A stretch of 64,000 nucleotides of DNA, from positions 496,001-560,000 of the forward strand of contig NW_025964360.1 in the NCBI RefSeq assembly GCF_023055435.1. Reading direction: 5' to 3'. The stretch comes from Haliotis rufescens. Its lineage: Eukaryota. Under the pieces are notes generated by a model. It ran no database searches, was not told the origin of the DNA, and saw only the letters and a list, made by a program, of their open reading frames with translations. The position numbers and the translations under genes are program-made. This document shows, piece by piece, positions 30,649 through 61,284 of this stretch. The number at the start of each line of letters is the position of its first letter. Position 1 is the first letter of the stretch.

Positions 30649-30709
30649 CTTCCTATGAAGCTAAATTGGTATAAAATAACTGAACGTTTGCCTTTTTATT
30701 TACAGAAGC

Positions 30710-32950
30710 ATGACCCTGCTGCCCCTGATGTACCTCTCAATGATGCTCACGACCTGTTGCTTCACACAGAACACTGTCAAGCAGATAAAGGAAAACATGA
30801 AATCCTATGCCAAGGGCTATGTTATCCAATACTATGCGCCTTATGTTAACACACAACCTGATGAGCATAAAATGAAGCTCTTGAAACACCTAGAGGACAA
30901 CCTGCTACTAATTACCAGTACGGAGGACAAGGAGATCGATGGGATGGACACACTGGTAAAGGGAAGAAGTAAAGTTTCCACAGACGTTGAAGATAATCTT
31001 GGTCCTAAAATCAGAAGTTTGTCTGCAAAGATTGACAGTAACGATGGCTTGCTTGTCTCCAATCCACAGAATTTGATGAGGGCAGTTTCCCGAGATGTAG
31101 AGGACAGTTTGGAACATAAGATCAGGAGTCTGTCCAATAAGGTTGACAGTAACGATGGCTTGCTTGTCTCCAATCCACAGAATTTGATGAGAGCAGTTTC
31201 CAGAGATGTAGAGAACAGTTTGGAACATAAGATCAGGAGTCTGTCCAATAAGGTTGACAGTAACGATGGCTTGCTTGTCTCCAATCCACAGAATTTGATG
31301 AGAGCAGTTTCCAGAGATGTAGAGAACAGTTTGGAACATAAGATCAGAAGCTTGTCTGCAAAGGTTGACAGTAACGATGGCTTGCTTGTCTCCAATCCAC
31401 AGAATTTGATGAGAGCAATTTCCCGAGATGTGGAGAACAGTCTGGAACATAAGATCAGGAGTCTGTCGAATAAGGTTGACAGTAACGATGGCTTGCTTGT
31501 CTCCAATCCACAGAATTTGATGAGAGCAGTTTCCAGAGATGTAGAGAACAGTTTGGAACATAAGATCAGAAGTTTGTCTGCAAAGGTTGACAGTAACGAT
31601 GGCTTGCTTGTCTCCAATCCACAGAATTTGATGAGAGCAGTTTCCCGAGATGTAGAGAACAGTTTGGAACATAAGATCAGAAGTTTGTCTGCAAAGGTTG
31701 ACAGTAACAATGGCTTGCTTGTCTCCAATCCACAGAATTTGATGAGGGCAGTTTCCAGAGATGTAGAGAACAGTCTCACAGACGTCATTGAAGCGATCAT
31801 CGATCAGCTACACAAAAATATGACTAGCGATGCCCAACTGTATAATGTTTTGAAAGAAGCATTGTTGTCATGGTTTCAATATCATGCTGAACACGATGAT
31901 ATGCAACTTCACAACCTTGACTTGGAGAATCTGATTAATTGGCTGACACTTGTGCACAACTCAAGGAGAAACGTCAGCAAAGAAGAGGAATCCTTTTACA
32001 CACACTGGAACACATCCCTGCCTATCTTGAGAGATACTTTGTCGTTCGCCGATACCGTCAAACCATTGTCAACATACGTATCCCTTTCTCTGATAGGCTT
32101 GACAGATAGCTTCATGAATCTCTACTGGCCTTTCCGTCGTGACATCAACCTAATGAACCAAAGATTAGCAGTCAAGGGTTTCAGGGGCACAGACGTGAGT
32201 GAAAATGATGCTAAGAAAGCGTTCTTTGACGAAATCAGAAAAATTCAGCCGATTCATCTCCCTGTGAAGAAAAATGAAATTGTACTCATCTTTGATGATG
32301 AGGACATAGCAGATTGGTTGAACGTCACAGGAGTTATGTCCCTTTCACCAGCCTACATGGCTTCTAAGAAACACATATTCACTGGGGAAGAGCAAAAGAA
32401 GATATCGACCACTGCACATGCCGCTCTCAGGATGATCAACAACACTCATCCTGAACTCTTTGACGCAATGACACAGATGATATCCTGCATTGCTTTCTAC
32501 AAACAAGAACACAAGGTTAACTTAGCTGGAGGAGTTCGCTCTGCCCTTGGTATGTTCTGGATGGACCCGAGTGTTGGGAGAGAATGGAGCGTTCCCTTCA
32601 TGGCGGAGCAAATAGTCCACGAGTACACCCACAACTCACTCAACTATGCAGAATTTGTCCATGGAACCTACAACGATAAATCGTCGTTGGGAAAGGCTGA
32701 GGTGAAATCGGCAATTCGTCTGGTTCCTCGACCCTACGACAAATCCCTGCATGCAGCTTACGTGTCAGCGGGACTTGTAACCTTTCATTCCAGGACTGGC
32801 TATCTGGAAAGAGCTGCACAGCTGCTGGAAACTCTTCCCCAAGCCGTGCGTGATCTGGCAACTGTGGAGGCAGAGAAGCATGTGTTGGATGGGTCCGGCA
32901 GGGCAATAGTCAAGTTCCTCACTGACTACATGTACCTCACAAGACTCTGA
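30710..32950 (+). CDS. Secreted repeat-containing protein with C-terminal alpha-KG-HExxH (peptide beta-hydroxylase-like) domain, copy 1 (746 aa, 7 x 37-aa repeats)
   Basis: Hydrophobic N-terminus MTLLPLMYLSMMLTTCCFT. Repeats at 30977-31777. GGVRSALGMFWMDP...AEQIVHEYTHNSL (HEYTH at 32618-32632)...SAIRLVPRPYDKSLHAAYV. Acceptor before the ATG; AATAAA at 32983. Confidence 0.85.
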   Translation: MTLLPLMYLSMMLTTCCFTQNTVKQIKENMKSYAKGYVIQYYAPYVNTQPDEHKMKLLKHLEDNLLLITSTEDKEIDGMDTLVKGRSKVSTDVEDNLGPKIRSLSAKIDSNDGLLVSNPQNLMRAVSRDVEDSLEHKIRSLSNKVDSNDGLLVSNPQNLMRAVSRDVENSLEHKIRSLSNKVDSNDGLLVSNPQNLMRAVSRDVENSLEHKIRSLSAKVDSNDGLLVSNPQNLMRAISRDVENSLEHKIRSLSNKVDSNDGLLVSNPQNLMRAVSRDVENSLEHKIRSLSAKVDSNDGLLVSNPQNLMRAVSRDVENSLEHKIRSLSAKVDSNNGLLVSNPQNLMRAVSRDVENSLTDVIEAIIDQLHKNMTSDAQLYNVLKEALLSWFQYHAEHDDMQLHNLDLENLINWLTLVHNSRRNVSKEEESFYTHWNTSLPILRDTLSFADTVKPLSTYVSLSLIGLTDSFMNLYWPFRRDINLMNQRLAVKGFRGTDVSENDAKKAFFDEIRKIQPIHLPVKKNEIVLIFDDEDIADWLNVTGVMSLSPAYMASKKHIFTGEEQKKISTTAHAALRMINNTHPELFDAMTQMISCIAFYKQEHKVNLAGGVRSALGMFWMDPSVGREWSVPFMAEQIVHEYTHNSLNYAEFVHGTYNDKSSLGKAEVKSAIRLVPRPYDKSLHAAYVSAGLVTFHSRTGYLERAAQLLETLPQAVRDLATVEAEKHVLDGSGRAIVKFLTDYMYLTRL
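30977..31777 (+). repeat. Coding 111-bp tandem repeat, 7 units (SRDVENSLEHKIRSLSNKVDSNDGLLVSNPQNLMRAV)
   Basis: Direct inspection of the ORF. Confidence 0.95.
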
Positions 32951-33494
32951 ATGTTCCATGCTGATTTTATATAAACTTTTTCAATAAACGGTTGCCAACT
33001 ATAATAGTTTTTACATTGATGTGCTTTTTGTGCAAGACAATTCAGATGTCAGAAGGTGTTCTCACATCCACACTGAACACGAACACGTTTTACTAAATGT
33101 CTGCTGTCCACTAGATATCTTGTCAATCGATGGTGCTGACTAAATGATACTTGAGTCAGTATATCATAGCTGTTCATTAATATCCCAGTCAATGGTACCC
33201 TAACTATTAAGCACTGGTCAGTGACATCACATTAACCCTCAAAAGTAATTAAATACCAACAGATTGGACAGTGGCATTTTTTCATCTTACAATTCAGATC
33301 CTCCAAGGGAAGAAAAGCTTCCTCAATTTTGAGCTGGTCAGTGGTTTCACCAGACCAACCAGGTCATGTGCACAGTGCACAATTTTAATGCACATGTCAA
33401 GAGAATCAATTGAGCACAGGTATCAGAAGCTATTAAGGATCAGAGTGAATAACACCACATCAAATCAGCCACCCTTGTCAGTTATGACCTTATG

Positions 33495-35020
33495 TATAAC
33501 TTATAACCTCCAATATACCCTGTAATGTTACACACCTTCTACACTGTGTAACGTGTCACTTCCAATATATGCTGTGATTTTACACTTCTTATAAGTATGT
33601 AACGTCACGCCTTCAATATACCTCTTGATGTTACACTTCTTATAAGTGTGTAATGTGTCACTTCCAAAATACCTCTTGATGTTACACTTCTTCTACACGG
33701 TGTAGCGTGTCACCTCCAATGTACCATGTGATGTTACACCTCTTCTACACTGTGTAACGAGACGCCTCCAATATACCGTGTGATGTTACACCACTTCTAC
33801 ACTGCATAACGTGTCACCTCCAATATGCCCACTGATGTTACACTTCTTATAACTGTGTAACGTTTCACCTCCGATATATACTGTGAGGTTACACCTCTTC
33901 TACAATGTGTAACGTTTCACCTCCGATATATACTGTGAGGTTACACCTCTTCTACACTGTGGAACGAGACACCTCCAATATACCCTGTGATGTTAACTTC
34001 TTCTATACTGTGTAACGTTTCATCTCCAATATACCGTTTGATGTTGCAACACTTCTATACTGTGTAACGTGTCATCTCAAATATACGGTGTAAGGTTACA
34101 CCTCTTCTACACTGTGTAACGTGTCACCTTCAATATACCCTTTGAGGTTACACCTCTTCTACACTGTGTAACGTGTCACCTTCAATATACCGTGTGAGGT
34201 TACACCTCTTCTACACTGTGTAACGTGTCACCTTCAATATACCGTGTGAGGTTACACCTCTTCTACACTGTGTAACGTGTCACCTTCAATATACCGTGTG
34301 AGGTTACACCTCTTCTACACTGTGTAACGTGTCACCTTCAATATACCGTGTGATGTTACACCTCTTTTACACTGTGTAACGTGTCACCTCCGATATACCG
34401 TGTGAGGTTACACCTTTTCTACACTGTGGAACGTGTCACCTTCAATATTAACTTTCAGGTTACACCTCTTCTACACTGTGGAACGTGTCACCTTCAATAT
34501 ACCGTGTGATGTTACACCTCTTCTACACCGTGGAACGTGTCACCTCCAATATACCGTGTGAGGTTACACCTCTTCTACATTGTGGAACGTGTCACCTCCA
34601 ATATACCGTGCGAGGTTACACCTCTTCTACACTGTGTAACGTGTCACCTCCAATATACCGTGTGAGGTTACACCTCTTTTACACTGGGTAACGTGTTACC
34701 TCCGATATATCGTGTGAGGTTACACCTCTTCTACACTGTGTAACGTGTCACCTCGAATATACCGTGTGAGGTTACACCTCTTCTACACTGTGTAACATGA
34801 CACCTCCAATATACCGTCTGATGTTACTTTTCTTATAACTATGTAACGTGTCACCTCAATTATACTTTGTGATGTTACACCTCTTATATACTGTATAACG
34901 TGACACCTCCAATATACTTTGTGATGTTACATTTCTCATAACTGTGTAACGTGACGCCTTCAATTTTACCTCTTGATGTTACACCTCTTTAACAGGGTGT
35001 TCGTGACACCTCCAATATAC
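33495..35020. repeat. 52-bp satellite type I (gtgaggttacacctcttctacactgtgtaacgtgtcaccttcaatataccgt) downstream of copy 1
   Basis: Period 52, made of two related 26-bp halves. Confidence 0.9.
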
Positions 35021-37780: not shown

Positions 37781-37953
37781 ACGTAAAAGAAAAGCCGCTG
37801 TTTGCTGATATGACCTAAATTATCTTATCTGTTCCAAAATACTTTCAGCATAACGCTTGCATGGCGTACATGGTGTTTACTCATTGTGGTGGGAACAATG
37901 ACATCTGATGCTGACAAACAGGATATATGTGTTGTTTACATTCTTCTAGACGG

Positions 37954-38035
37954 TATAAATATGACTTGTGATAGTTGTCTTTCATACCACACTCAAACTC
38001 CTATTCAGCTAAACACATCACAAGACAAGGTAAGT
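37954..38035 (+). promoter_or_regulatory. TATA box, non-coding exon 1 and donor (GTAAGT at 38030) of copy 2
   Basis: Homologous to 29548-29627; acceptor at 39873-39874. Confidence 0.75.
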
Positions 38036-39547: not shown

Positions 39548-39818
39548 TGAGTTCGGTTTAACTCGGCTTTTAACATTATTCCAGTTATATCACGGCGTGT
39601 CAGCTTAATGTGGGAGGAAAGCCCGAAGTGATGCAGGTCTCAGACGTTTACCGCTTCGGTGAAACCCACGAGCACGGGTATGGTGCTGACAAACCTGGAA
39701 ACATAATCGGGGCGAACCGGGATTCGAAACCACAATCATAGGTTTCTGGCGTGCCCAAGGGACGCAACTCTGCACAGCGAATCGCGGCGCCTTAGACGAC
39801 TGGGCCACCCTTGCCCCC
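39548..39818 (-). mobile_element. SINE family D in the intron of copy 2, TSD tcctatgaag
   Basis: Direct repeat on both sides; the empty site tctcctatgaagcc is present in copy 4 (about 59232-59243). Confidence 0.9.
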
Positions 39819-39878
39819 TTCCTATGAAGCTTAATTGGTATAAAATAACTGAACGTTTGACTTTTTATTTACAGAAAC

Positions 39879-42230
39879 ATGACCCTGCTGACCCTGATTT
39901 ACCTCTCAATGATGCTCACGACCTGTTGCTTCACACAGAGCACTGTCAAGCAGATAAAGGAAAACATGAAATCCTATGCCAAGGGCTATGTTATCCAATA
40001 CTATGTGCCTTATGTTAACACACAACCTGATGAGCATAAAATGAAGCTCTTGAAACACCTAGAGGACAACCTGCTACTAATTACCAGTACGGAGGACAAG
40101 GAGATCGATGGGATGGACACACTGGTAAAGGGAAGAAGTAAAGTTTCCACAGACGTTGAAGATAATCTTGGTCCTAAAATCAGAAGTTTGTCTGCAAAGG
40201 TTGACAGTAACGATGGCTTGCTTGTCTCCAATCCACAGAATTTGATGAGGGCAGTTTCCCGAGATGTAGAGGACAGTTTGGAACATAAGATCAGGAGTCT
40301 GTCCAATAAGGTTGACAGTAACGATGGCTTGCTTGTCTCCAATCCACAGAATTTGATGAGGGCAGTTTCCCGAGATGTAGAGGACAGTTTGGAACATAAG
40401 ATCAGGAGTCTATCCAATAAGGTTGACAGTAACGATGGCTTGCTTGTCTCCAATCCACAGAATTTGATGAGAGCAGTTTCCAGAGATGTAGAGAACAGTT
40501 TGGAACACAAGATCAGGAGTCTGTCCAATAAGGTTGACAGTAACGATGGCTTGCTTGTCTCCAATCCACAGAATTTGATGAGAGCAGTTTCCCGAGATGT
40601 AGAGAACAGTTTGGAACATAAGATCAGGAGTTTGTCTGCAAAGGTTGACAGTAACGATGGCTTGCTTGTCTCCAATCCACAGAATTTGATGAGAGCAGTT
40701 TCCGGAGATGTAGAGGACAGTTTGGAACATAAGATCAGGAGGCTGTCCAATAAGGTTGACAGTAACGATGGCTTGCTTGTCTCCAATCCACAGAATTTGA
40801 TGAGAGCAGTTTCCCGAGATGTAGAGAACAGTTTGGAACATAAGATCAGGAGTTTGTCCAATAAGGTTGACAGTAACGATGGCTTGCTTGTCTCCAATCC
40901 ACAGAATTTGATGAGGGCAGTTTCCCGAGATGTAGAGGACAGTTTGGAACATAAGATCAGAAGTTTGTCTGCAAAGGTTGACAGTAACAATGGCTTGCTT
41001 GTCTCCAATCCACAGAATTTGATGAGGGCAGTTTCCCGAGATGTAGAGAACAGTCTCACAGACGTCATTGAAGCGATCATCGATCAGCTACACAAAAATA
41101 TGACTGGCGATGCCCAACTGTATAATGTTTTGAAAGAAGCATTGTTATCATGGTTTCAATACCATGCTGAACACGATAATATGCAACTTCACAACCTTGA
41201 CTTGGAGAATCTGATTAATTGGCTGACACTTGTGCACAACTCACGGAGAAACGTCAGCAAAGAAGAGGAATCCTTTTACACACACTGGAACACATCCCTG
41301 CCTATCTTGAGAGATACTTTGTTGTTCGCCGATACCGTCAAACCATTGTCAACATACGTATCCCTTTCTCTGATGGGCTTGACAGATAGCTTCATGAATC
41401 TTTACTGGCCTTTCCGTCGTGACATCAACCTAATGAACCAAAGATTAGCAGTCAAGGGTTTCAAGGGCACAGACGTGAGTGAAAGTGATGCTAAGAAAGC
41501 GTTCTTTGGCGAAATCAGAAAAATTCAGCCGATTCATCTCCCTGTGAAGAAAAATGAAATTGTACTCATCTTTGATGATGAGGACATAGCAGATTGGTTG
41601 AACGTCACAGGAGTTATGTCCCTTTCACCAGCCTACATGGCTTCTAAGAAACACATATTCACTGGGGAAGAGCAAAGGAGGATATCGACCACTGCACATG
41701 TCGCTCTCAGGATGATCAACAACACTCATCCTGAACTCTTTGACGCAATGACACAGATGATATCCTGCATTGCTTTCTACAAACAAGAACACAAGGTTAA
41801 CTTAGCTGGAGGAGTTCGCTCTGCCCTTGGTTTGTTCTGGATGGACCCGAGTGTTGGGAGAGAATGGAGCGTTCCCTTCATGGCGGAGCAAATAGTCCAC
41901 GAGTACACCCACAACGCACTCAACTATGCAGAATTTGTCCATGGAACCTACAACGATAAATCCACGTTGGGAAAGGCTGAGGTGAAATCGGCCATTCGTC
42001 TGGTTCCTCGTCCCTACGACAAATCCCTGCATGCAGCTTACGTGTCAGCGGGACTTGTAACCTTTCATTCCAGGACTGGCTATCTGGAAAGAGCTGCACA
42101 GCTGGTGGAAACTCTTCCCCAAGCCGTGCGTGATCTGGCAACTGTGGAGGCAGAGAAGCTTGTGCTGGATGGGTCCGGCAGGGCAATAGTCAAGTTCCTC
42201 ACTGACTACATGTACCTCACAAGACTCTGA
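39879..42230 (+). CDS. Secreted repeat-containing alpha-KG-HExxH-like protein, copy 2 (783 aa, 8 x 37-aa repeats)
   Basis: Near-identical to copy 1; repeats at 40146-41057; HEYTH...RLVPRPYDKSLH intact; AATAAA at 42263. Confidence 0.85.
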   Translation: MTLLTLIYLSMMLTTCCFTQSTVKQIKENMKSYAKGYVIQYYVPYVNTQPDEHKMKLLKHLEDNLLLITSTEDKEIDGMDTLVKGRSKVSTDVEDNLGPKIRSLSAKVDSNDGLLVSNPQNLMRAVSRDVEDSLEHKIRSLSNKVDSNDGLLVSNPQNLMRAVSRDVEDSLEHKIRSLSNKVDSNDGLLVSNPQNLMRAVSRDVENSLEHKIRSLSNKVDSNDGLLVSNPQNLMRAVSRDVENSLEHKIRSLSAKVDSNDGLLVSNPQNLMRAVSGDVEDSLEHKIRRLSNKVDSNDGLLVSNPQNLMRAVSRDVENSLEHKIRSLSNKVDSNDGLLVSNPQNLMRAVSRDVEDSLEHKIRSLSAKVDSNNGLLVSNPQNLMRAVSRDVENSLTDVIEAIIDQLHKNMTGDAQLYNVLKEALLSWFQYHAEHDNMQLHNLDLENLINWLTLVHNSRRNVSKEEESFYTHWNTSLPILRDTLLFADTVKPLSTYVSLSLMGLTDSFMNLYWPFRRDINLMNQRLAVKGFKGTDVSESDAKKAFFGEIRKIQPIHLPVKKNEIVLIFDDEDIADWLNVTGVMSLSPAYMASKKHIFTGEEQRRISTTAHVALRMINNTHPELFDAMTQMISCIAFYKQEHKVNLAGGVRSALGLFWMDPSVGREWSVPFMAEQIVHEYTHNALNYAEFVHGTYNDKSTLGKAEVKSAIRLVPRPYDKSLHAAYVSAGLVTFHSRTGYLERAAQLVETLPQAVRDLATVEAEKLVLDGSGRAIVKFLTDYMYLTRL

Positions 42231-42431: not shown

Positions 42432-45295
42432 CTCAACGGCAGGACAACTGGAGACAAAGAGGGTAGTTTCACTTACATAGCAGATCAAGGATGTAGCGTA
42501 ATCGATTATTTTATAGGTTCAGTTAATGTTCACAATTGTTGTCAATCCATGTTTGTGGATACAAGAGTTGAGTCAAAACATATGCCTGTATGTCTACATT
42601 TGGACATATTTCTCCCTAAAGTATCTACAAGTGATGATTATCTTTCCACCAAAACACACAAATATAAATGGAACCCTCGTAAGCGTGATGTGTTTATAGG
42701 AAGTATAACAAATCTATGTCCATCCTTCAACGAGCTCATCGATCTTTTAACTTTTGATTTCAATCTTGCCCTCGAAAAATTTGTTAATGTTGTTCTTTGT
42801 GCCGCTGACTGTATGAAGGTACCTTGTGTTAAAAGTTCACCCCGAAATACGGGGTTTTATAATAGTGAATGCAGACGAGCAAAACGGGAAGCGAGGCGAT
42901 ACATGAGGAAATTCAAAGAGAAGAAATCTAACGAAAATAAGTTAATCTTTTGTAAAATGAGAAACAAGTATAAACATGTTTGCAGAACAGCAAAATCAAA
43001 CTATCAATTTATGACACGAACAAAACTAAAGCTATCTCTATCTGATTCAACCACATTTTGGAAAGAGTTACGGAGTATATCAGGTCGTAGGGAAACAAAG
43101 AATAACATAAGTAAAGAGTGCTGGTTTGATCATTTTACAAACGTTTTTCAGTGTACAGATGTATTACATGTTGAAGTCGAATGTCAATGTGATGAAGATT
43201 TTATACTTGATGAGATTGACCAGTGTATTTTGGAGTCGCCGATTACCGACTCAGAAATCCACAAGGCTATAAATCGTAAAGATAAAGAATGGCAAATCCC
43301 CTGGTGTTGATGACGTGGTCATTGAAATGTTAAAATGTTGTGAAAATGTAATAACTCCTTTCCTACGAAATTTGTTCAATAAGTTATTTGATTCTGGATT
43401 ATTCCCTCAGAACTGGACAAAAGCTATTATCCTTCCACTACATAAGAAAGGTAACAAAAATAATCCAGATAACTTTAGAGGGATATCTCTATTGTGTACA
43501 ATTAGTAAGGTTTACACAAGTGTCTTAAACTCTAGACTTACTAACTGGGCTAATATAAGAAGTAAATTACCCGAGACACAAGCAGGCTTTAGGCAGGGAT
43601 ATTCTCCTGCTGACCACATATTCACGTTGAATGCAATTGTTAACAAATGTTTATCGAACAGAAAAGGGAAATTATACGTTGCTTTTGTGGATTTTAAAAA
43701 AGCCTTTGATTCAGTAAATCATCTTAAACTATGGGAGTGTCTGCACGATGTAGGCTTGGGTGGAAAGATGATGAGAGCACTTAAGGGAATCTATGCCTCC
43801 GTAAAAGCGTGTGTGAGATGTAATGATAACATTTATACAGAATATTTTGATTGTCCTAACGGAGTTAAACAAGGCTGTATATTAAGCCCTCTATTATTTT
43901 CCTTTTTCATCAATGAACTGTCAAATGATGTTTCATCACATGGGAAACACGGCGTACAATTATTTCCTGACTTGTTTGAAATATTATTATTATTGTTTGC
44001 CGACGATGTTATTCTTGTCTCTGACACAGTAACTGGTTTACAGAACCAACTTCATATTCTTGATAACTTTGCAGATTCACATGAATTAACGGTTAATTTA
44101 GATAAAACGAGTGTTGTTGTATTTAGACGAGGAGGGCGGTTATCTGTTCATGAGAAATGGTTCTATAAAGGCAAACGTATTTCAACCGCCAACTCCTATA
44201 GATATCTTGGGTTTGTATTCTCATATACATCAAAGATGAACCAATGTGTTTCAGATCTAGCATCAAGGGGTAAACGAGCTTTAATGGAAATATTTCGCAA
44301 TCTACGGAAGATTGGTTTTGTTGACACTTCAGTTTTCTTTAAAATATTTGATACTCAGATTCAAACTATTCTTTTATATGGTGCGGAAATATGGGGTGTA
44401 GACAGATTTGAAAAAATAGAACAAGTGCATATTATGGCTTGTAAGAAGTTTCTTAACGTTGGTTTGCAAACCCCAAATGCTATTGTGTATGGGGAATGCG
44501 GTCGGTACCCACTACATGTAAATGCTATGTGTCGTTCTGTAAAGTATTGGCTAAAACTGATTGAAATGGACGAAGATAGGATACCAAGAAAATCTTATAA
44601 TATGCTTGTATATAACGACAAGTGTGGTCGTCAAAACTATGCTTCTTCTATTCGTTCCATATTATTTTCTCACGGATTCGGAGTAGTTTGGCTCAGTCAA
44701 GCTGTTGGCGACAAACCGTCATTCATGAATAGTTTTAAAAACGTTTTGATAAATATGTTCTACCAATCATAGAATAGTACTATCAAGGCTAGTTCTAGGT
44801 ACATTCTGTATAAAGAATTTAAAAGTCTCCTGGAACCAGAAAAATACCTTTCCATTATTACTGAAATAAAATATCGAAATGTTTTGATAAGGCTTAGAGC
44901 CGGGCTACTAAGACTTAAGGTAAACGAAGGTAGATGGGCTGATATTGACTTAAGTTTACGACTCTGTCCCATATGTCAAACAAGTATAGAGAATGAATAT
45001 CATTTTACTTTAGAATGTGAATATTACAACGATATTAGACATCTGTATTTACCAACAACATTTTGCAATAATCCAAATATGCATAAATTTAAAACGCTAC
45101 TGTCATCTTCGTGTAAACAATTCCTTGGAAAACTATGTAAATACCTGTATTACAGCTATGAAAGAAGACGTAATTATGAAAAGCCTGTAAACCTGTAAAT
45201 TTGTACCTGACATTACCTTTTTTCATGTACCACACTATTTCAAATGTATGTATTGTATATGGGCCAGTGGCCTTGGTACAAATAAAGACTTCTTC
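42432..45295 (+). mobile_element. 5'-truncated non-LTR retrotransposon (CR1/L2 group): end of the APE endonuclease, RT, and C-terminal Cys motif; inactivated
   Basis: Starts in frame LNGRTTGDKEGSFTY...SVIDYF. RT motifs QAGFR, FVDFKKAFDSV, GVKQGCILSPLLF, LLFADD. Frameshift near 43280 and TAG at 44770. Inserted at a TACT site that is uninterrupted downstream of copies 1, 3 and 4. Confidence 0.92.
43315..44772 (+). pseudogene. LINE ORF2 reverse transcriptase segment
   Basis: Canonical non-LTR RT motifs; bounded by a frameshift and a premature stop. Confidence 0.9.
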
Positions 45296-45664: not shown

Positions 45665-46660
45665 TGTGACTCCTCTAATATACCGTGTGATGTTACATTT
45701 CTTCTACACTGTGTAACGTGTAACTTCCAATATATGCTGTGATTTTACACTTCTTATAAGTATGTAACGTCAATATACCTCTTGATGTTACACTTCTTAT
45801 AAGTGCGTAATGTGTCACTTCCAAAATACCTCTTGATGTTACACTTCTTCTACACTGTGTAACGTGTCACCTCCAATATACCGTGTGATGTTACACCTCT
45901 TCTACACTGTGTAACGTGTCACCTCCGATACATCCTTTGATGTTACAACTCTTCTACACTGTGTAACGTTTCACCTCCGATATATACTGTGAGGTTACAC
46001 CTCTTCTACACTGTGTAACGTGTCACCTCCGATATATACTGTGAGGTTACACCTCTTCTACACTGTGTAACGTGTCACCTCCAGTATACCCTCTGAGGTA
46101 ACACCTCTTCTACACTGTGTAACGTGTCACCTACAATATTCCGTGTGAGGTTACACCTCTTCTGCAGTGTGTAAAGTGTCACCTCCAATATACCCTGTGA
46201 GGTTACACCTCTTCTACACTGTGTAACGTGTCACCTCCAATATACCTTGTGATGTTACACTTCTTCTACACTGTGTAACGTGACGCCTTCAAAATAACTC
46301 TGGATGTTACACTTCTTCTACACTGTGTAACGTGTCAACCCCAATATACCGTGTGAGGTTACACCTCTTTTACAGTGTGTAACTTGACACCTCCAATATT
46401 CCCTGTGATGTTACACTTCTTATGAATGTGTAACGTGACGCCTCCAATATACCCTGTGATGTCACACCTCTTCTACAGTGTGTAACGTGTCACCTCAAAC
46501 ATACTTTGTGATATTATTTTTCTTCTAAACTGTGTAAAGTGACGCCTTCAATTATACCTCTTGATGTTACACCTCTTATATACTGTATAACGTGACACAT
46601 CCAATATACTTTGTGATATTACATTTCTTATAACTGTGTAACGTGACGCCTTCAATATAC
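45665..46660. repeat. 52-bp satellite type I downstream of copy 2
   Basis: Homologous to 33495-35020. Confidence 0.9.
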
Positions 46661-47909
46661 CCTATGTTGAACATCTAATATACTGGTAATGTGAAACCTG
46701 ATATATACCTTGTGATGTTGAACATCTAATATACTGGGTAATGTGAAACCCGATTCATGCCTTATGATGTTGACCATCTTATATGCTGGGTAATGTGAAA
46801 CCTGATTTATACCTTATGATGTTGAACATCCAGTATACTGGGTAATGTGAAACCTGATTAATACCTTATGATGTTGAACATCTAAAATACTGGGTAATGT
46901 GAAACCTGATTTATACCTTGTGATGTTGAACATCCAGTATACTGGGTAATGTGGAACCTGATTAATACCTTGTGATGTTGAACATCTAATATACTGGGTA
47001 ATGTGAAACCTGATTTATACCTTGTGATGTTGAACATCTAATATCCTGGGTAATGTGAAATCTCAGTCATACCTTGTGATGTTGAATATCTAATATCCTG
47101 GGTAATGTGAAATCTGATTGATACCTTGTGATGTTGAACATCTAATATACTGGGTAATGTGAAACCTGATTTATACCTTGTGATGTTGAACATCTAACAT
47201 ACTGGGTAATGTGAAACCTGATTCATACCTTGTGATGTTGAGGATCTAATATACTGGGTAATGTGAAACCTGATTCATACCTTGTGATGTTGAACATCTA
47301 ATAATCAGGATAATGTGAAACCTGATTTATACCTTGTTATGTTGAACATCTAATATACTGGGTAATGTGAAACCTGATTTATACCTTGTGATGTTGAATA
47401 TCTAATATCCTGGGTAATGTGAAATCTCATTCATACCTTGTGATGTTGAACATCTAATATACTGGGTAATGTGAAACCTGATTTATACCTTGTGATGTTG
47501 AACATCTAATATACTGGGTGATGTGAAATCTGATTTATACCTTGTGATGTTGAACATCTAATATACTGGGTAATGTGAAATCTGATTGATACCTTGTGAT
47601 GTTGAACATCTAACATACTGGGTAATGTGAAACCTGATTTATACCTTGTGATGTTGAGGATCTAATATACTGGGTAATGTGAAACCTGATTCATACCTTG
47701 TGATGTTGAACATCTAATAATCAGGATAATGTGAAACCTGATTTATACCTTGTGATGTTGAGGATCTAATATACTGGGTAATGTGAAACCTTATTTATAC
47801 CTTGTGACGTTGAACAACTTATATACTGGACAATGTGAAACCTGATTTATACCTTATGATGTTGAACACCTGATATACTGGGAAATGTGAAACGTCATTT
47901 ATACCTTGT
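46661..47909. repeat. 52-bp satellite type II (taccttgtgatgttgaacatctaatatactgggtaatgtgaaacctgattta), about 24 units
   Basis: Only a few units exist at the equivalent position after copy 1 (35245-35780). Confidence 0.92.
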
Positions 47910-48190
47910 GAGTGAGTGAGTGAGTTGGGTTTAACTCCGCTTTTAACAGTATTCCAGGTATATCACGGCGTGTCAGCTTAATGTGGGAGGAAAGCCCGAA
48001 GTGATGCAGGTCTCAGACGTTTACCACTTCGGTGAAACCCACGAGCACGGGTATGGTGCTGACAAACCTGGAAACATAATCGGGGCGAACCGGGATTCGA
48101 AACCACAGTCATAGGTTTCTGGCGTGCCCAGGGACGCAACTCTGCACAGCGAATCGCGGCGCCTTAGACGACTGGGCCACCCTTGCCCCC
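47910..48190 (-). mobile_element. Chimeric SINE family D (recombination junction)
   Basis: The left flank ttataccttgt is the TSD of the downstream-type insertion; the right flank tcctatgaag is the TSD of the intronic insertion. Confidence 0.85.
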
Positions 48191-48250
48191 TTCCTATGAA
48201 GCTTAATTGGTATAAAATAACTGAACGTTTGACTTTTTATTTACAGAAAC

Positions 48251-49936
48251 ATGACCCTGCTGACCCTGATGTACCTTTCAAAGATGCTCACGACCTGTTG
48301 CTTCACACAGAGCACTGTCAAGCAGATAAAGGAAAACATGAAATCCTATGCCAAGGGCTATGTTATCCAATACTATGTGCCTTATGTTAACACACAACCT
48401 GATGAGCATAAAATGAAGCTCTTGAAACACCTAGAGGACAACCTGCTACTAATTACCAGTACGGAGGACAAGGAGATCGATGGGATGGACACACTGGTAA
48501 AGAGAAGAAGTAAAGTTTCCACAGACGTTGAAGATAATCTTGGTCCTAAAATCAGAAGTTTGTCTGCAAAGGTTGACAGTAACGATGGCTTGCTTGTCTC
48601 CAATCCACAGAATTTGATGAGGGCAGTTTCCCGAGATGTAGAGGACAGTCTGGAACATAAGATCAGAAGTTTGTCTGCAAAGGTTGACAGTAACGATGGC
48701 TTGCTTGTCTCCAATCCTCAGAATTTGATGAAGGCAGTTTCAAGAGATGTAGAGAACAGTCTCATAGACGTCATTGAAGCGATCATCGATCAGCTACACA
48801 AAAATATGACTGGCGATGCCCAACTGTATAATGTTTTGAAAGAAGCATTGTTATCATGGTTTCAATACCATGCTGAACACGATAATATGCAACTTCACAA
48901 CCTTGACTTGGAGAATCTGATTAATTGGCTGACACTTGTGCACAACTCACGGAGAAACGTCAGCAAAGAAGAGGAATCCTTTTACACACACTGGAACACA
49001 TCCCTGCCTATCTTGAGAGATACTTTGTTGTTCGCCGATACCGTCAAACCATTGTCAACATACGTATCCCTTTCTCTGATGGGCTTGACAGATAGCTTCA
49101 TGAATCTTTACTGGCCTTTCCGTCGTGACATCAACCTAATGAACCAAAGATTAGCAGTCAAGGGTTTCAAGGGCACAGACGTGAGTGAAAGTGATGCTAA
49201 GAAAGCGTTCTTTGGCGAAATCAGAAAAATTCAGCCGATTCATCTCCCTGTGAAGAAAAATGAAATTGTACTCATCTTTGATGATGAGGACATAGCAGAT
49301 TGGTTGAACGTCACAGGAGTTATGTCCCTTTCACCAGCCTACATGGCTTCTAAGAAACACATATTCACTGGGGAAGAGCAAAAGAGGATATCGACCACTG
49401 CACATGCCGCTCTCAGGATGATCAACAACACTCATCCTGAACTCTTTGACGCAATGACACAGATGATATCCTGCATTGCTTTCTACAAACAAGAACACAA
49501 GGTTAACTTAGCTGGAGGAGTTCGCTCTGCCCTTGGTTTGTTCTGGATGGACCCGAGTGTTGGGAGAGAATGGAGCGTTCCCTTCATGGCGGAGCAAATA
49601 GTCCACGAGTACACCCACAACTCACTCAACTATGCAGAATTTGTCCATGGAACCTACAACGATAAATCCACTTTGGGAAAGGCTGAGGTGAAATCGGCCA
49701 TTCGTCTGGTTCCTCGTCCCTACGACAAATCCCTGCATGCAGCTTACGTGTCGGCGGGACTTGTAACCTTTCATTCCAGGACTGGCTATCTGGAAAGAGC
49801 TGCACAGCTGGTGGAAACTCTTCCCCAAGCCGTGCGTGATCTGGCAACTGTGGAGGCAGAGAAGCATGTGCTGGATGGGTCGGGCAGGGCAATAGTCAAG
49901 TTCCTCACTGACTACATGTACCTCACAAGACTCTGA
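48251..49936 (+). CDS. alpha-KG-HExxH-like protein, copy 3 (561 aa, 2 repeats); ORF intact but without its own promoter and exon 1
   Basis: Repeats at 48518-48763; catalytic motifs intact; M11K in the signal peptide; acceptor at 48245-48246 kept; AATAAA at 49969. Confidence 0.75.
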   Translation: MTLLTLMYLSKMLTTCCFTQSTVKQIKENMKSYAKGYVIQYYVPYVNTQPDEHKMKLLKHLEDNLLLITSTEDKEIDGMDTLVKRRSKVSTDVEDNLGPKIRSLSAKVDSNDGLLVSNPQNLMRAVSRDVEDSLEHKIRSLSAKVDSNDGLLVSNPQNLMKAVSRDVENSLIDVIEAIIDQLHKNMTGDAQLYNVLKEALLSWFQYHAEHDNMQLHNLDLENLINWLTLVHNSRRNVSKEEESFYTHWNTSLPILRDTLLFADTVKPLSTYVSLSLMGLTDSFMNLYWPFRRDINLMNQRLAVKGFKGTDVSESDAKKAFFGEIRKIQPIHLPVKKNEIVLIFDDEDIADWLNVTGVMSLSPAYMASKKHIFTGEEQKRISTTAHAALRMINNTHPELFDAMTQMISCIAFYKQEHKVNLAGGVRSALGLFWMDPSVGREWSVPFMAEQIVHEYTHNSLNYAEFVHGTYNDKSTLGKAEVKSAIRLVPRPYDKSLHAAYVSAGLVTFHSRTGYLERAAQLVETLPQAVRDLATVEAEKHVLDGSGRAIVKFLTDYMYLTRL

Positions 49937-50820: not shown

Positions 50821-50821
50821 C

Positions 50822-51690
50822 TTCATGTTCCACATCTTATATACTGTGTAACGTGAAACCTCCAATATACTCTGTGATGTTCCACCTCTTATAACTGTGT
50901 AACGTGACACCTCCAATATACTCTGTGATGTTCCACCTCTTATAATTGTGTAACGTGACACCTCCTATATACCCTGTGATGTTCCACCTCTTATAACTGT
51001 GTAACGTGACACCTCCAATATACCCTGTGATGTTCCACCTCTTATAACTGTGTAACGTGACACCTCCAATATACCCTGTGATGTTCCACCTCTTATAACT
51101 GTGTAACGTGACACCTCCAATATACCCTGTGATGTTCCACCTCTTATAACTGTGTAACGTGAAACTTCCAATATACCCTGTGATGTTCCACCTCTTACAA
51201 CTGTGTAACGTGAAACCTCCAATATACTCTGTGATGTTCCACCTCTTATAACTGTGTAACGTGACACCCCCAATATACCCTGTGATATTCCACCTCTTAT
51301 AACTGTGTAACGTGACACCTCCAATATACCCCGTGATGTTCCACCTCTTACAACTGTGTAACGTGACACCTCCAATATACCCCGTGATGTTCCACCTCTT
51401 ATAACTGTATAAGGTGTTACCTCCAATATACCCTGTGATGTTCTACATCTTATAACTGTGTAACGTGACACCTCCAATATACTCTGTGATGTTCCACCTC
51501 TTATAACTGTGTAACGTGACACCTCCAATATACCCTGTGATATTCCACCTCTTATAACTGTGTAACGTGACACCTCCAATATACCCTGTGATGTTCCACC
51601 TCTTATAACTGTGTAACGTGACCCCTCCAATATACCCTGTAAAGTTCCACCTCTTTTATACTGTGTAAAGTGACACCTCCAATGTACTGG
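50822..51690. repeat. 51-bp variant of satellite type I (ctgtgatgttccacctcttataactgtgtaacgtgacacctccaatatacc)
   Basis: About 16 units. Confidence 0.92.
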
Positions 51691-51869
51691 ATAAAGATAC
51701 ACCTCGAATGTTTTTGAACACCTTACACCTCAAACACGATAGATAATCGACGCCTTCAATAAACTTGGTACGGTTCAACCGCCAAAATATCTGGTAACTT
51801 TCAAAAGTTAGTGTATTGTGTAATGCAGAACCTCCAAAACAACTTGTTACGTTACACCTCCAATACCGC

Positions 51870-53452
51870 GTAATCGTACACCTCGAAAACGCTAAGAAAC
51901 GTTACACCTTCTCTATACCAGGTAATCTTACACCTCGAACACGCTAAATAACGTTACACCTTCACTACACAACGTAATCTTACACCGCGAACACGCTAAA
52001 TAACGTTACACCTTCACTATGCCAGGTAATCTTACACCTCGAACACGCTAAGTAACGTTACACCTTCACTTTACCAGGTAATCTTACACCTCGAACACGC
52101 TATGTAACGTTACACCTTCACTATGCCAGGTAATCTTAAACCTCGAACACGATAAGTAACGTTACACCTTCACTTTACCAGGTAATCTTACACCTCGAAC
52201 ACGCTAAGAAAACGTTACTCCTTCACTATGCCAGGTAATCTTACACCTCGAAAACGCTAAGTAACGTTACTCCTTCACTACACAACATAATCTTACACCT
52301 CGAACGCGCTAAGTAACGTTACACCTTCTCTTTGCCAGGTTATCTTACATCTCGAACACGCTAAGTAACGTTACACCTTCACTATGCCAGGTTATCTTAC
52401 ACCTCGAACACGCTAAGTAACGTTACACCTTCACTATGCCAGGTAAGCTTACACCTCGAACACGCTAAGTGACGTTACACCTTCACTATGCCAGGTTATC
52501 TTACACCTCGAACACGCTAAGTAACGTTACACCTTCACTATGCCAGGTAATCTTACACCTCGAACACGCTAAGTGACGTTACACCTTCACTTTGCCAGGT
52601 TATCTTACACCTCGAACACGCTAAGTAACGTTACACCTTCACTATGCAAGGTAATCTTACACCTCGAAAATGCTAAGTAACGTTACTCTTTCACTATGCC
52701 AGGAAATCTTACACCTCGAACACTCTAAGAGACGTTACACCTTCACCATGCCAGGAAATCTTACACCTCGAACATTCTAAGTAACGTTACACCTTCACTA
52801 TGCCAGGTAATCTTAAACCTCGAACACGCCAAATGACGTTACACCTTCACTATGCCAGGTAATCTTACACCTCGAACAAGCTAAGTAACGTTACACCTTC
52901 ACTATGCCAGGTAATCTTACACCTCGAACACGCTAAGTTACGTTACACCTTCACTATGCCAGGTAATCTTACACCTCGACAACGCTAAGTAACGTTACAC
53001 CTTCACTATGCCAGGTAATCTTAAACCTCGAACACGCTTAGTGACGTTACACCTTCACCATGCCAGGAAATCTTACACCTCGAACATTCTAAGTAACGTT
53101 ACACCTTCACTATGCCAGGTAATCTTACACCTCGAACACGCCAAATGACGTTACACCTTCACTATGCCAGGTAATCTTACACCTCGAACACGCTAAGTAA
53201 CGTTACACCTTCACTATGCCAGGTAATCTTACACCTCGAACACGCTAAGTAACCTTACTCATTCACTATGCCAGGTAATCTTACACCTCGAACATTCTAA
53301 GTAACGTTACACCTTCACTATGCCAGGTAATCTTACACTTCGAACACGCTAGGTAACGTTACACCTTCACTATGCCAGGTAATCTTACACCCCGAACACG
53401 CTAAGTAACGTTACACCTTCTCTATGCCAGGTAATCTTACACCTCGAACACG
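51870..53452. repeat. 52-bp satellite type III (ttacacctcgaacacgctaagtaacgttacaccttcactatgccaggtaatc), about 30 units
   Basis: Direct inspection. Confidence 0.92.
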
Positions 53453-54915
53453 TTGAGTAGTAACAGCGACGGGTATCAACATAATCTAGCTACTCTTATC
53501 AAATGGTGTTGATGTCGACGTCATTGACATGAAAACAACCCACGAAGACTTGAACTTCTATAAAATCCTATATCCTTTAATTGATAAAAGAGTTTTAAGT
53601 TTCATAATTAAGTTATTGTTTCAGAACACCTCGAAAATAGTATTAGTTAGCATGCCGATTATTGATATACACAAAAAAGAAACATTTGTGTTCTGGGTAG
53701 TTTAGGTAGGTCAAGGTTTTATTTCCTTCAAATCGTGCATTATAACACAAAGTCATTTGGAACGTCTTTCTCTTGTACAACATTTGGATCAACAGTCTAT
53801 ATGATTGTCATTGTTTCTCTATCACGTCACCACTGAATGTTTAATGCTGAATAGTGTGTTGTACAAATATTTCCGTTCGTTCATTTTCCGAAATTGTCTA
53901 TTAATTCAATCAATCAATGTTAACCTTTTCCATAATCATATAAAATCTCACCAAAAAGTCCATTTGTCTCTTGAATAGTGACGGTAATCAGATGAAGGCT
54001 AAAATGTGAGCGAATCCATCAGTAGCACCAATCACAAAAACATGCAATCCCCACATGCTAAGTGTGTGCATGTTTGACCCCATCGTCTGATACGGTGCAA
54101 TTCGCTGTGCCAGATCGTAGCTTCACATACCTGGTCACAGTTGTCGGGCCTAGTTCTCTTAGTCGCCGATGTTTTCTTGCAGAGTTGCGCCCCTTAGGCT
54201 TGAGTGGGAACCTATGATCGTGGGTTCGAACTCGAGGTTCGCCAGATTATGTTTCTTGGTTTGTCAGCACCATACCCGTACTCGTATCTTTAGAAGTGGG
54301 TCGCCACGTTCCACCAGAGAAGAGACTGGTTTAATTCTGCCCCAAATGAAGTTCATGCATTGAAAATGAAATTATTTTTTCACGTGCACTGGCTGTTTTA
54401 TGAGGGCGAATGTCGTGAATTGACTGTAAGAGCAACAATGCACGACATGACACACAACCAACCGGAACATACAATGTAACCATCCTCACCATACATATGC
54501 AGGTTTGGTTATGTTACTCGCGACGCACGCTTTCACCATGTTGAAGAATCATCCTCAGCATCCTCATCCTCAGCCACACACAAGTGCATGCTACGCGACG
54601 TTCAACCCTATTTCCAAACCCTCCCCTGCCTCCCCCCCCCCCCCCCCCCCCACCTCACCTCCCTGATACGCCCTGACATAACAGATTAACAGTTCAAGCC
54701 GAACTCAACATCACTGAAAACATCTGCCAGTTTACATTTAATATAAGATTACATCAGAGACATGCCACTGCTTTATTATCTTATCTGTTTCAAAATAACA
54801 GTAACAAAACTCTTTAAATGGTGTATTCGCTGTTTACTCATTGGAACGAGGTGAGAATAACACATCTGGTGCTGACAAAAAGGATCTATTGCGTTGTTTT
54901 CATTCTTCTAGACAG

Positions 54916-54997
54916 TATAAATATGACTTGTGATAGGTGTCCTTCATACTACACTCAAACTCCTATTCAACTACACACGTCACCAGACCAGGTAAGT
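54916..54997 (+). promoter_or_regulatory. TATA box, non-coding exon 1 and donor (CAG|GTAAGT at 54992) of copy 4
   Basis: Homologous to 29548-29627; acceptor at 59284-59285, giving a 4.3-kb intron. Confidence 0.75.
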
Positions 54998-55694: not shown

Positions 55695-56674
55695 CACTCA
55701 CGCCCAAAAGAAATTTTACCAGAGTTTAAAATCATTCTTGCTCCAAAACAACAAAACATACATGCATGAAGTAAAGTGTATTGAGACCATCAATCTATCA
55801 ACATAATCAACACTGAAAATGACAATCATACCGCCACCGAGAATGACGTAAGAGCCCCCCACAGTTGGGTGTGGTGCAAGACTCGAGCTTTCAGAATCAT
55901 GGACAATAGGCAGAGTACATTGTTGTCTTCCATCAGCCCTAAACATACAGAATCGACTTTCGTCAGTGAAGACAACCCTCTGCCAGTCATGTCGTTGCCA
56001 ACGTCGTACAGTCCGGGCCCATCTCAATCGCAGACGACGATGTTGCGCTGTCAATAGCTGTCCTCTATGTGGTCTAAAAGCCCTGATTCCATGAGCCCTG
56101 AGTCTCCTGGCCACTGTCTGTCGACTAACCCTGTGACCTAAGGCATTTGTCGCCGATGACGTCACTGTCAGGAAGCGATTTCGGAGGTGCAAGGTACGCA
56201 AGAACCGGTCATCATGGGGCGTGGTCACCCTGGGTCTGCCTGTCCTTGGCCTGTCAGCTGTCCGCCCTGTCTGTCTGTAACGTTGCATCAAGTTGGTAAC
56301 GGCAACACGGGAGCAACCGAAGGTTCGTGCAATATGGGCGTGGGTTGCTCCCATCTGTACCATACCCAAGGCTCATTCACGTTGTTCGACTGTGAGTCGT
56401 GGCATTTCTTTTGTGTTTTTCATCACTGTGGATGTCTGACTTGCCGTTGCAATCGTTTTATACCCTTACCCGCACGTACATTTGCAGTTGTCCGTGGTGC
56501 ACGTGTTTTTCACATTTTCGCGTGTTATCTCGCAAACAGGTAACAGACGATTAACATTTTCTGCATACATTATTGTTTTATTTAGGTACTTTAGATAGAC
56601 TTCATCGAAAAAAAATGTATACTTTGTCTGAAATTTATATTTTCAGTTGGTAAAGTTCCTTTTGGACGTCAGTT
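55695..56674 (-). mobile_element. Internally deleted Tc1-like transposon in the intron of copy 4
   Basis: 26-bp imperfect TIRs (CACTCACGCCCAAAAGAAATTTTACC / GGTAAAGTTCCTTTTGGACGTCAGTT) flanked by TA. Transposase starts MPRLTVEQRE* at 56405, with paired-like HTH, GRPRVTT and VVFTDESRF, then is truncated. Confidence 0.88.
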
Positions 56675-59289: not shown

Positions 59290-61284
59290 ATGACCCTGCT
59301 GACCCTGATGTACCTCTCCATGATGCTCACGACCTGTTGCTTCACACAGAGCACTGTCAAGCAGATAAAGGAAAACATGAAATCTTATGCCAAGGGCTAT
59401 GTTATCCAATACTATGTGCCTTATGTTAAAACACAACCTGATGAGGATAAAATGAAGCTCTTGAAACATCTAGACGAAAACCTGCTACTTATTACCGGTA
59501 CGGAGAACAAGGAGGTGGTCGATCGGAAAGACACACTGGCAAAGAGTAGAAATATAGTTTCTAGAGATGTAGAAGATATAATTGGAAAAAAAATCAGAAG
59601 TTTGTCTGCTAAGGTTGAAAGTAACGATGGATTGCTTGTCGATATAAAGAATCAGATGAAGTCAGTTTCTAGAGATGTGGAGGAAAGTCTGGAAGATAAG
59701 GTCAGACGTTTGTCTGACAAGGCTGACAATGACGGTCTCATGATTATAATACAGAATCTGATGAAGGCAGTTTCCAGAGATGTGGAGGAAAGTCTGGAAG
59801 ATAAGGTCAGACGTTTGTCCGACAAGGCTGACAATGACGGTCTCATGAGTATCACAAAGGATCTGATGAAGGCAGTTTCCAGAGATGTGGAGGAAAGTCT
59901 GGAAGATAAGGTCAGACGTTTGTCTGACAAGGCTGACAATGACGGTCTCATGATTATAATACAGGATCTGATGAAGGCAGTTTCCAGAGATGTGGAGGAA
60001 AGTCTGGAAGATAAGGTCAGACGTTTGTCTGACAAGGCTGACAATGACGGTCTCATGATTATAATACAGAATCTGATGAAGGCAGTTTCCAGAGATGTGG
60101 AGGAAAGTCTCAGAAACGCCACTGAAGCGATCGACGGTCAACTACACAAAGATATATCTGATGATGCTCAACTATATACTTTGCTGAAAGAAACATTGTT
60201 GCCATGGCTTCGATATAATGATGAACACGATAATATACAACTTCACAACCTTGACTTGGATAATCTGATTAATTGGCTGACACTGGTGCACAACTCAAGG
60301 AGAAACATCAGCACAAAAGAGGAATCCTTTTACCAACATTGGAACACATCCCTGCCTATCTTGAGTGATACTTTCTTGTTCGCTGATACCATCAAACCAC
60401 TGTCAACATACGTATCCCTTTCTCTGATGGGCTTGACAGATCGCTTCATGAATCTCTACTGGCCTTTCCGTCGTGACATCAACCTAATGCACCAAAGATT
60501 AGCAGTCAAGGGTTTCAGGGGCACAAGCGTGTCTGACAGTGATGTCAAGGAAGCATTCTTTGATGACTTCAGAAAAGTTCAACCAATTCATCTCCCTGTA
60601 AAGAAGAATGAGATTGTTCTTGTCTTTAATGATGAGGACATAGCGGATTGGTTGAATGTCACAGGAGTTTTGTCCCTTTCACCATCCTACATGGCTTCTA
60701 AGAAACACATATTCACTGGGGAAGAGCAATGGAGGATATCAACCACTGCACATGCCGCTCTCAGGATGATCAACAACACTCATCCTGAACTCTTTGACGC
60801 AATGACACAGATGATAGCCTGCATTTCATTCTATAAACAAGAACACAAAGTAAACATAGCTGGAGGATCTCGTGCTGCCCTTGGCATGCTCTGGATGGAC
60901 CCTAGTGTTGGGAGAAAATGGAGCGTTCCCTTCATGGCTGAGCAAATAGTCCACGAGTACACCCACAACGTACTCAACTATGCAGAATTTGTCCATGGAA
61001 CCTACAACGATAAATCCACTTTGGGAAAGGCTGAGGTGAAATCGGCCATTCGTCTGGTTCCTCGTCCCTACGACAAATCCCTGCATGCAGCTTACGTGTC
61101 GGCGGGACTGGTAACCTTTCATTCCAGAACTGGCTATCTGGAAAGAGCTGCACAACTGGTTGAAACTCTTCCCCAAGCAGTGCGTGATCTGGCAACTGTT
61201 GAGGCAGACAAGCATGTGCTTGATGGGTCCGGCAGGGCAATAGTCAAGTTCCTCACTGACTACATGTACCTCACAAGACTCTGA
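59290..61284 (+). CDS. alpha-KG-HExxH-like protein, copy 4 (664 aa; one 36-aa plus four 35-aa repeats), the most divergent paralog
   Basis: Repeat unit SRDVEESLEDKVRRLSDKADNDGLMIIIQNLMKAV at 59560-60111; AGGSRAALGMLWMDP...HEYTH...RLVPRPYDKSLHAAYV; AATAAA at 61317. Confidence 0.85.
   Translation: MTLLTLMYLSMMLTTCCFTQSTVKQIKENMKSYAKGYVIQYYVPYVKTQPDEDKMKLLKHLDENLLLITGTENKEVVDRKDTLAKSRNIVSRDVEDIIGKKIRSLSAKVESNDGLLVDIKNQMKSVSRDVEESLEDKVRRLSDKADNDGLMIIIQNLMKAVSRDVEESLEDKVRRLSDKADNDGLMSITKDLMKAVSRDVEESLEDKVRRLSDKADNDGLMIIIQDLMKAVSRDVEESLEDKVRRLSDKADNDGLMIIIQNLMKAVSRDVEESLRNATEAIDGQLHKDISDDAQLYTLLKETLLPWLRYNDEHDNIQLHNLDLDNLINWLTLVHNSRRNISTKEESFYQHWNTSLPILSDTFLFADTIKPLSTYVSLSLMGLTDRFMNLYWPFRRDINLMHQRLAVKGFRGTSVSDSDVKEAFFDDFRKVQPIHLPVKKNEIVLVFNDEDIADWLNVTGVLSLSPSYMASKKHIFTGEEQWRISTTAHAALRMINNTHPELFDAMTQMIACISFYKQEHKVNIAGGSRAALGMLWMDPSVGRKWSVPFMAEQIVHEYTHNVLNYAEFVHGTYNDKSTLGKAEVKSAIRLVPRPYDKSLHAAYVSAGLVTFHSRTGYLERAAQLVETLPQAVRDLATVEADKHVLDGSGRAIVKFLTDYMYLTRL

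Follow-up and report, generated by a model that had tools for sequence, protein, structure and literature searches.

Four tandem genes at a Haliotis rufescens locus

We analysed a stretch of 64,000 nucleotides from Haliotis rufescens (contig NW_025964360.1, positions 496,001 to 560,000; hereafter the window), part of contig C582 of the 1.33-Gb assembly. It carries a cluster of four paralogous genes, genes 1–4, whose products join a block of tandem peptide repeats to a C-terminal domain of a family of iron-dependent peptide oxygenases. The genes are four uninterrupted open reading frames (ORFs) arranged head to tail on the + strand, of 746, 783, 561 and 664 aa, each with an intron-free coding sequence in one coding exon. 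Their common layout is a hydrophobic N-terminus, a conserved helical segment of ~70 aa, the repeat block, and a catalytic domain of ~318 aa. An initial annotation, made from the sequence alone, had described four paralogs with a signal peptide, a repeat block and a C-terminal domain, and all of these parts are present in the four ORFs, the first as a signal-like hydrophobic stretch.

The coding exon of gene 1 (30710–32950, +) contains seven units of 37 aa (~30974–31777) and the catalytic fold (31994–32947), with the HExxH motif at nt 32618–32632 and an R-x3-R-P-x5-H motif at nt 32717–32752. In gene 2 (39879–42230, +), eight 37-aa units (~40143–41057) precede the catalytic fold (41274–42227; HExxH at 41898–41912, R-x3-R-P-x5-H at 41997–42032). 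Gene 3 (48251–49936, +) has two 37-aa units (48515–48763) and the fold at 48980–49933 (HExxH at 49604–49618, R-x3-R-P-x5-H at 49703–49738). Gene 4 (59290–61284, +) has five units, one of 36 aa and four of 35 aa (~59566–60111), and the fold at 60328–61281 (HExxH at 60952–60966, R-x3-R-P-x5-H at 61051–61086). Over the last 388 aa, genes 1–3 share 96–99% protein identity, and gene 4, the most diverged copy, is 86–87% identical to them. A fifth copy, ~2.8–4.4 kb past the window end (C582:562834–564434), has the N-terminus, one or two repeats, and stop codons in the catalytic part; it is a pseudogene at the cluster edge.

RefSeq models of H. rufescens, annotated 'uncharacterized protein', are 100% identical to the encoded window proteins. 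Gene 3 and the RefSeq protein P0001 are identical save for one 37-aa unit (561 versus 524 aa in P0001); either the copy number is polymorphic or the repeat was assembled differently.

The genes have animal anatomy

The blocks upstream of genes 1, 2 and 4 are 89% identical over ~240 bp and contain a TATA box followed ~65 nt on by a CAAG|GTAAGT splice donor. The acceptor context, a polypyrimidine tract and an AG 5 nt before the ATG, is identical across genes 1–4. Because the donor block and the acceptor are shared, each gene can be read as a short non-coding exon 1, one intron of 1.1–4.3 kb and a single coding exon. For gene 1, the promoter block and exon 1 span 29420–29621 on the + strand (TATA box at 29548–29555, donor after 29621), and the intron in the 5′ untranslated region (5′-UTR) occupies ~1.08 kb (29622–30705). 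The corresponding block of gene 2 lies at 37828–38029 (+; TATA box at 37954–37961, donor after 38029), with its intron running to 39874, and that of gene 4 at 54790–54991 (+; TATA box at 54916–54923, donor after 54991), with a 5′-UTR intron of ~4.3 kb to 59285. An AATAAA poly(A) signal is found exactly 33 nt after the stop codon in all four genes, at 32983–32988 in gene 1 and from 42263, 49969 and 61317 in genes 2, 3 and 4. Upstream of gene 3 the promoter and exon-1 pattern is absent, and an RVT_1 retroelement and a 52-bp satellite occupy the expected place.

Mobile and repetitive DNA separates the copies. A non-long terminal repeat (non-LTR) retroelement lies between genes 2 and 3 (42549–45198; its ORF at 43315–44769 matches RVT_1 at 125 bits), and the gene 4 5′-UTR intron contains a Tc1/Tc3-type transposase remnant on the minus strand (55716–56366; HTH_Tnp_Tc3_2, 44 bits). 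Satellite arrays of 51–52 bp (33506–35020, 45672–47911 and 50825–53459) occupy much of the space between the paralogs. Taken together, the TATA block, the donor and acceptor, the AATAAA at +33, and the retroelement, transposase remnant and satellites between copies identify genes 1–4 as animal genes and not contamination. The satellite arrays may also have promoted the tandem duplications of the paralogs.

The C-terminal domain belongs to the aKG-HExxH oxygenase family

Genes 1, 3 and 4 matched the NCBIfam profile TIGR04267 ('aKG-HExxH-type peptide beta-hydroxylase', IPR026337) at 63–64.5 bits (64.5 for gene 1) over positions 2–174 of 177, above the curated cutoff of 40 bits, and six other molluscan members scored 56–67 bits. 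Pfam, run on the full window proteins, returned sub-threshold noise from the repeats and no peptidase family. A search of PDB sequences with a single sequence gave no match; a profile built from 93 family members found ChlH (PDB 8S5F) at an E value of 3.4e-7, in an alignment that placed HExxH on HExxH, R-x3-R-P on the equivalent stretch of ChlH, and the downstream His on a His.

The 388 aa outside the repeats were modelled with AlphaFold2 (predicted local distance difference test score (pLDDT) 93.3, predicted template modelling score (pTM) 0.92). Foldseek searches with this model gave as sole significant matches the chains of 8S5F (E 6e-8) and 22ob, deposited as 'SjiH-Ni', and we found no paper describing SjiH in the literature searched. 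The predicted fold of the C-terminal domain is the distinct helical ChlB-HExxH fold, and profile, motif and fold all place the domain in this family. The initial annotation had made the same assignment, naming best matches among gluzincin or metzincin proteases as the contrary outcome; both the profile and the structure comparisons returned the oxygenase family instead. Its broader interpretation, an animal homologue of an enzyme that tailors peptides made on the ribosome and modified after translation (RiPPs), is supported by profile, motif, fold and the animal anatomy of the genes.

Residue conservation was assessed across 129 aligned rows, 19 from molluscs and 110 others. None of them departs from the His, Glu and His of HExxH or from R489, the second Arg of R-x3-R-P; the first Arg, R485, is kept in 18 of the 19 mollusc rows. 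The candidate third ligand, H496, lies 44 residues past the first HExxH histidine, has the conserved arginines ahead of it and is kept in 18/19 mollusc and 106/110 other rows (124/129 overall). Within the window, HExxH and R-x3-R-P-x5-H are unchanged in all four copies, and an upstream GG..R..ALG..WMDP stretch varies solely at the positions quoted in the initial annotation.

Positively charged residues bind 2-oxoglutarate (aKG) in the TIGR04267 family (PMC12614342). In ribosomal peptides, bacterial members beta-hydroxylate Asp, His, Phe, Gln, Asn and Pro by an Fe/2-oxoglutarate-dependent reaction, and two of them, PflC and PosC, additionally perform oxidative backbone cleavage (PMC12636437, PMC13060819). 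Judged from their sequences, the window proteins would use the same Fe(II) and 2-oxoglutarate chemistry.

The catalytic part is conserved and the proteins are predicted to enter the secretory pathway

The ratio of non-synonymous to synonymous substitution rates (dN/dS) between genes 1–3 and gene 4 is ~0.30 on the catalytic 318 aa and 0.54–0.95 in the N-terminal and middle parts; the catalytic part is under purifying selection. Mean Kyte–Doolittle hydropathy over residues 2–19 is 1.2–1.6 for genes 1–4, and N-termini resembling signal peptides are found throughout the family. Of two N-glycosylation sequons, one occurs in 13/19 and the other in 10/19 mollusc rows; neither occurs in any of the 110 other rows. 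These features are consistent with a location in the endoplasmic reticulum (ER). The co-substrates would be available in the ER lumen, because other animal 2-oxoglutarate hydroxylases, ASPH and the collagen hydroxylases, work there.

The family is found in abalones and bivalves and nests among bacterial-type proteins

Three further intact single-ORF paralogs (1302, 784 and 423 aa, the last on contig C68) lie on other contigs of the same genome, for a total of seven intact paralogs on four contigs. Annotated orthologs exist in H. cracherodii, H. rubra and H. asinina, which with H. rufescens makes four Haliotis species, and more distant members occur in the bivalve genera Mercenaria, Mya, Mactra and Pinctada; every one is labelled an uncharacterised or hypothetical protein. 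The Haliotis and bivalve orthologs lie on Mb-scale contigs.

When 1.84 billion representatives were searched exhaustively with the profile, ~30 animal-type members were returned and, after a drop in score, hundreds of proteins of ~280 aa. The handful with names belong to Bacillus phage SPbetaL1, Chthoniobacterales and Ectobacillus; both bacterial proteins are called 'HEXXH motif-containing putative peptide modification protein'. The top non-molluscan match is a 292-aa protein of SPbetaL1; three unannotated ORFs of 62–66 aa lie directly upstream of it (region L014 4348–5879) and are possible precursor peptides.

Maximum-likelihood analysis groups the 19 mollusc rows in one clade (Shimodaira–Hasegawa-like approximate likelihood ratio test (SH-aLRT) 100, long stem) nested among the ~280-aa proteins, and the closest of the large ESM Atlas clusters are bacterial without exception. 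The nested mollusc clade, the bacterial neighbour clusters and the intron-free coding sequence together suggest that a bacterial or phage gene was acquired once, by an old horizontal transfer, before the divergence of gastropods and bivalves.

Tandem repeats as candidate substrates

The repeat blocks of genes 1–4 consist of 111-nt or 105-nt units with 93–95% matches, in 6.9, 7.7, 1.9 and 4.4 copies (TRF). In nearly every branch of the family an array follows the conserved N-terminal segment and precedes the catalytic fold, and each branch has a different one; across paralogs and orthologs the units range from 15 to ~50 aa, in up to ~40 copies. Two abalone paralogs have a signal peptide and a KR or GKR site in each unit (C401, L011 2357–6265, with ~23 units of 38 aa; C79, L012 2881–5235, with 6 units of 52 aa), and thus resemble classical multi-copy propeptides much more closely than genes 1–4 do. 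In bivalve and other animal-type members the units are of 15–28 aa in up to ~40 copies, with dibasic sites in several bivalve members.

With confidence only a little above even, we favour the reading that this is a mollusc-specific, horizontally acquired and secreted aKG-HExxH oxygenase family whose likeliest substrates are its own repeats, so that each repeat-bearing protein would combine a multi-copy precursor with the enzyme that tailors it. Four lines of evidence fit the repeats as substrates without amounting to proof. First, the arrays of paralogs and orthologs look unrelated to one another and occupy an equivalent place in the chain. Second, consensus units for 13 repeat types were compared with 2,000 shuffles, and a Met-basic-hydrophobic core was found in 11 of the 13 (shuffled mean 1.95; none of the 2,000 shuffles reached 11), with M-[KR]-[ILV]-x-D in 6/13 (shuffled mean 0.09). 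This shared core argues, suggestively, against spacers that drift freely and for arrays descended from an ancestral unit under constraint. Third, three proteins from ENA assemblies, P0021, P0159 and P0173, which represent two diverged sources (68% identical over the N-terminal 330 aa), have a PF13532 2OG-Fe(II) oxygenase domain (35 bits, cutoff 31.2), then tandem 16-aa units (~39 in P0021 and P0159, ~25 in P0173), and then the aKG-HExxH domain. Two oxygenase domains bracketing an array are otherwise hard to explain, which points to the array as what both act on. Fourth, when the whole gene 3 protein was modelled, pLDDT was high (83–94) in the N-terminal segment and low (37–62) in the repeats, a pattern in keeping with a flexible array held at either end by a folded enzyme. 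We found no stand-alone precursor genes with window-type repeats or the window-type N-terminus in the genome; those of the window would, if they are substrates, be fused-only.

Several observations weigh against this reading. The tree is unrooted and its non-molluscan rows are mostly metagenome proteins. The core motifs were defined after the data had been seen and the repeat types are not independent, so the core statistic is suggestive only. Canonical dibasic (KR/RR, GKR) cleavage sites, the mark of prohormone-type precursors, are absent from the units of genes 1–4; across the family, dibasic pairs occur in 8 of the 13 repeat types against a shuffled mean of 6.4, no more often than expected from composition, and we rejected their enrichment as evidence. 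The window units resemble amphipathic helices and could be structural. Some members have no repeats (the 423-aa paralog on C68; P0009, P0010 and P0014), so the enzyme can exist without a fused array. A predicted complex of the catalytic part with two repeat units scored 0.00, which speaks neither for nor against binding.

Proposed mechanism

Under the favoured reading of an oxygenase fused to its own substrates, the signal peptide would direct the protein into the ER, where the C-terminal domain would bind Fe(II) through the two HExxH histidines and the third His, and 2-oxoglutarate through the conserved arginines. The domain would then oxidise (hydroxylate) side chains of repeat units, either its own or those of an adjacent molecule. 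Where a paralog carries KR or GKR sites, its units could afterwards be freed by convertases; in genes 1–4 the array may stay intact or be released in another way.

A bolder form of this proposal, to which we give somewhat less than even credence, is that molluscs make tailored ribosomal peptides from self-contained polyproteins: the acquired oxygenase would hydroxylate its fused core peptides in the secretory pathway, perhaps with oxidative cutting like that of PflC and PosC. If true, this would be the first fused precursor–enzyme (RiPP-like) system in animals, and roles of the products could lie in signalling, defence, calcium binding or biomineralisation.

Alternative explanations

The family may instead comprise active aKG-HExxH oxygenases that act in trans, in the secretory pathway or outside the cell, on matrix, mucus or shell proteins, for example, with the repeats serving as a fast-drifting spacer, stalk or oligomerisation module. 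We think this unlikely but worth serious consideration. It would accommodate the members wholly without repeats, the predicted (low-confidence) helical form of the window units and their lack of convertase sites, and the faster change of the units, in number and sequence, relative to the catalytic part; the complex prediction gave no support for repeat binding, although it was uninformative. It accounts poorly for a common core in 11/13 repeat types, for arrays of up to ~40 near-identical short units, which are typical of multi-copy peptide precursors, for the lineage with two oxygenase domains flanking its array, and for window-type repeats that occur nowhere else in the genome.

That the domain is a zinc-dependent HExxH metallopeptidase, hydrolysing the repeat array or other substrates, and not an oxygenase, seems to us very improbable: the best profile and structure matches are to the oxygenase family by a wide margin, the co-substrate arginines and the third His are conserved, and no Pfam peptidase family matched. 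Scarcely credible is a decaying or contaminant remnant of bacterial DNA without function in the animal, for which the intron-free coding sequence, the bacterial or phage nature of the closest non-molluscan relatives, the missing recognisable promoter of gene 3 and the broken fifth copy might be cited, but which is at odds with seven intact paralogs on four contigs of a 1.33-Gb animal assembly, orthologs on Mb-scale contigs in four Haliotis species and four bivalve genera, a dN/dS of ~0.3, a eukaryotic promoter, intron and poly(A) signal, and signal peptides with mollusc-specific sequons.

Significance

Recognition of the aKG-HExxH enzymes dates only from 2024, and the descriptions in the literature searched come solely from bacterial peptide natural-product clusters. 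The same literature gave no description of animal TIGR04267/IPR026337 members, in keeping with the initial annotation, whose author knew of no such family in animals. These animal genes encode a version of the recently discovered bacterial family that is fused to repeats and predicted to be secreted, and that is undescribed for animals in that literature. Its presence in abalone and clams, conserved, expanded and secreted, would extend aKG-HExxH chemistry to animals and clearly exemplify how a bacterial gene for peptide tailoring can be domesticated once transferred horizontally. It would also point to a class of modified animal peptides or proteins that neuropeptide and proteome searches miss, because ordinary searches do not look for the mass shift.

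Other features of the window

In the introns of genes 1–3, a repeat element of ~300 bp lies just upstream of the acceptor (~30390–30690, 39560–39860 and 47930–48230); it is absent from gene 4 and looks like a short interspersed nuclear element (SINE). ARAGORN found no tRNA genes in 29000–62000, a range that includes this element. Further upstream, a GC-rich (66%) and strongly skewed tandem array at 15895–18669 (overlapping frame 16179–17363) contains a proline-rich ORF of 924 aa and is probably a minisatellite rather than a gene. A run of N at 27028–27313 marks an assembly gap or a masked stretch.

Comparison with known systems

The bacterial aKG-HExxH oxygenases, ChlB-HExxH/ChlH (8S5F), BpmH/BipH, PflC, PosC and PesO, belong to the same family (TIGR04267/IPR026337), although the abalone domain is only 19–29% identical to bacterial proteins. 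Unlike them, the abalone genes are animal-encoded, with a promoter, an intron and a poly(A) signal, and their products have a predicted signal peptide, conserved N-glycosylation sequons and an extra N-terminal helical module. The abalone proteins carry tandem peptide arrays in the same chain, whereas the bacterial systems have a separate precursor gene, and the abalone genes have none of the radical SAM, MNIO or transporter neighbours of the bacterial clusters.

With zincins (gluzincins, metzincins, botulinum- and anthrax-type light chains, Wss1) the likeness is slight: the abalone domain matched no peptidase profile, does not have the metzincin third His or Met-turn spacing, and is structurally far less similar to them than to the oxygenases. 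The resemblance to ASPH and the collagen prolyl and lysyl hydroxylases lies in the predicted compartment and the co-substrates and, for ASPH, in the type of product (beta-hydroxy-Asp/Asn). Those enzymes are built on a double-stranded beta-helix (cupin) with a His-x-Asp/Glu...His triad, whereas the abalone family has a helical zincin-like HExxH fold.

Fused or repeat precursors are known from burpitides (the products of plant BURP-domain cyclases), fungal borosins and KEX2-processed repeat peptides (PMC11253845, PMC10107690). Fold and chemistry are unrelated to those of burpitides and borosins, which rely on copper-dependent cross-linking or methylation, as opposed to the Fe/2-oxoglutarate hydroxylation predicted here, and the self-modification demonstrated in the burpitide and fungal systems is, for the abalone proteins, a prediction from their architecture. 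What the abalone proteins would share with burpitides and the fungal fused precursors is the combination of a signal peptide, an array of short core peptides and a tailoring enzyme in one secreted polypeptide.

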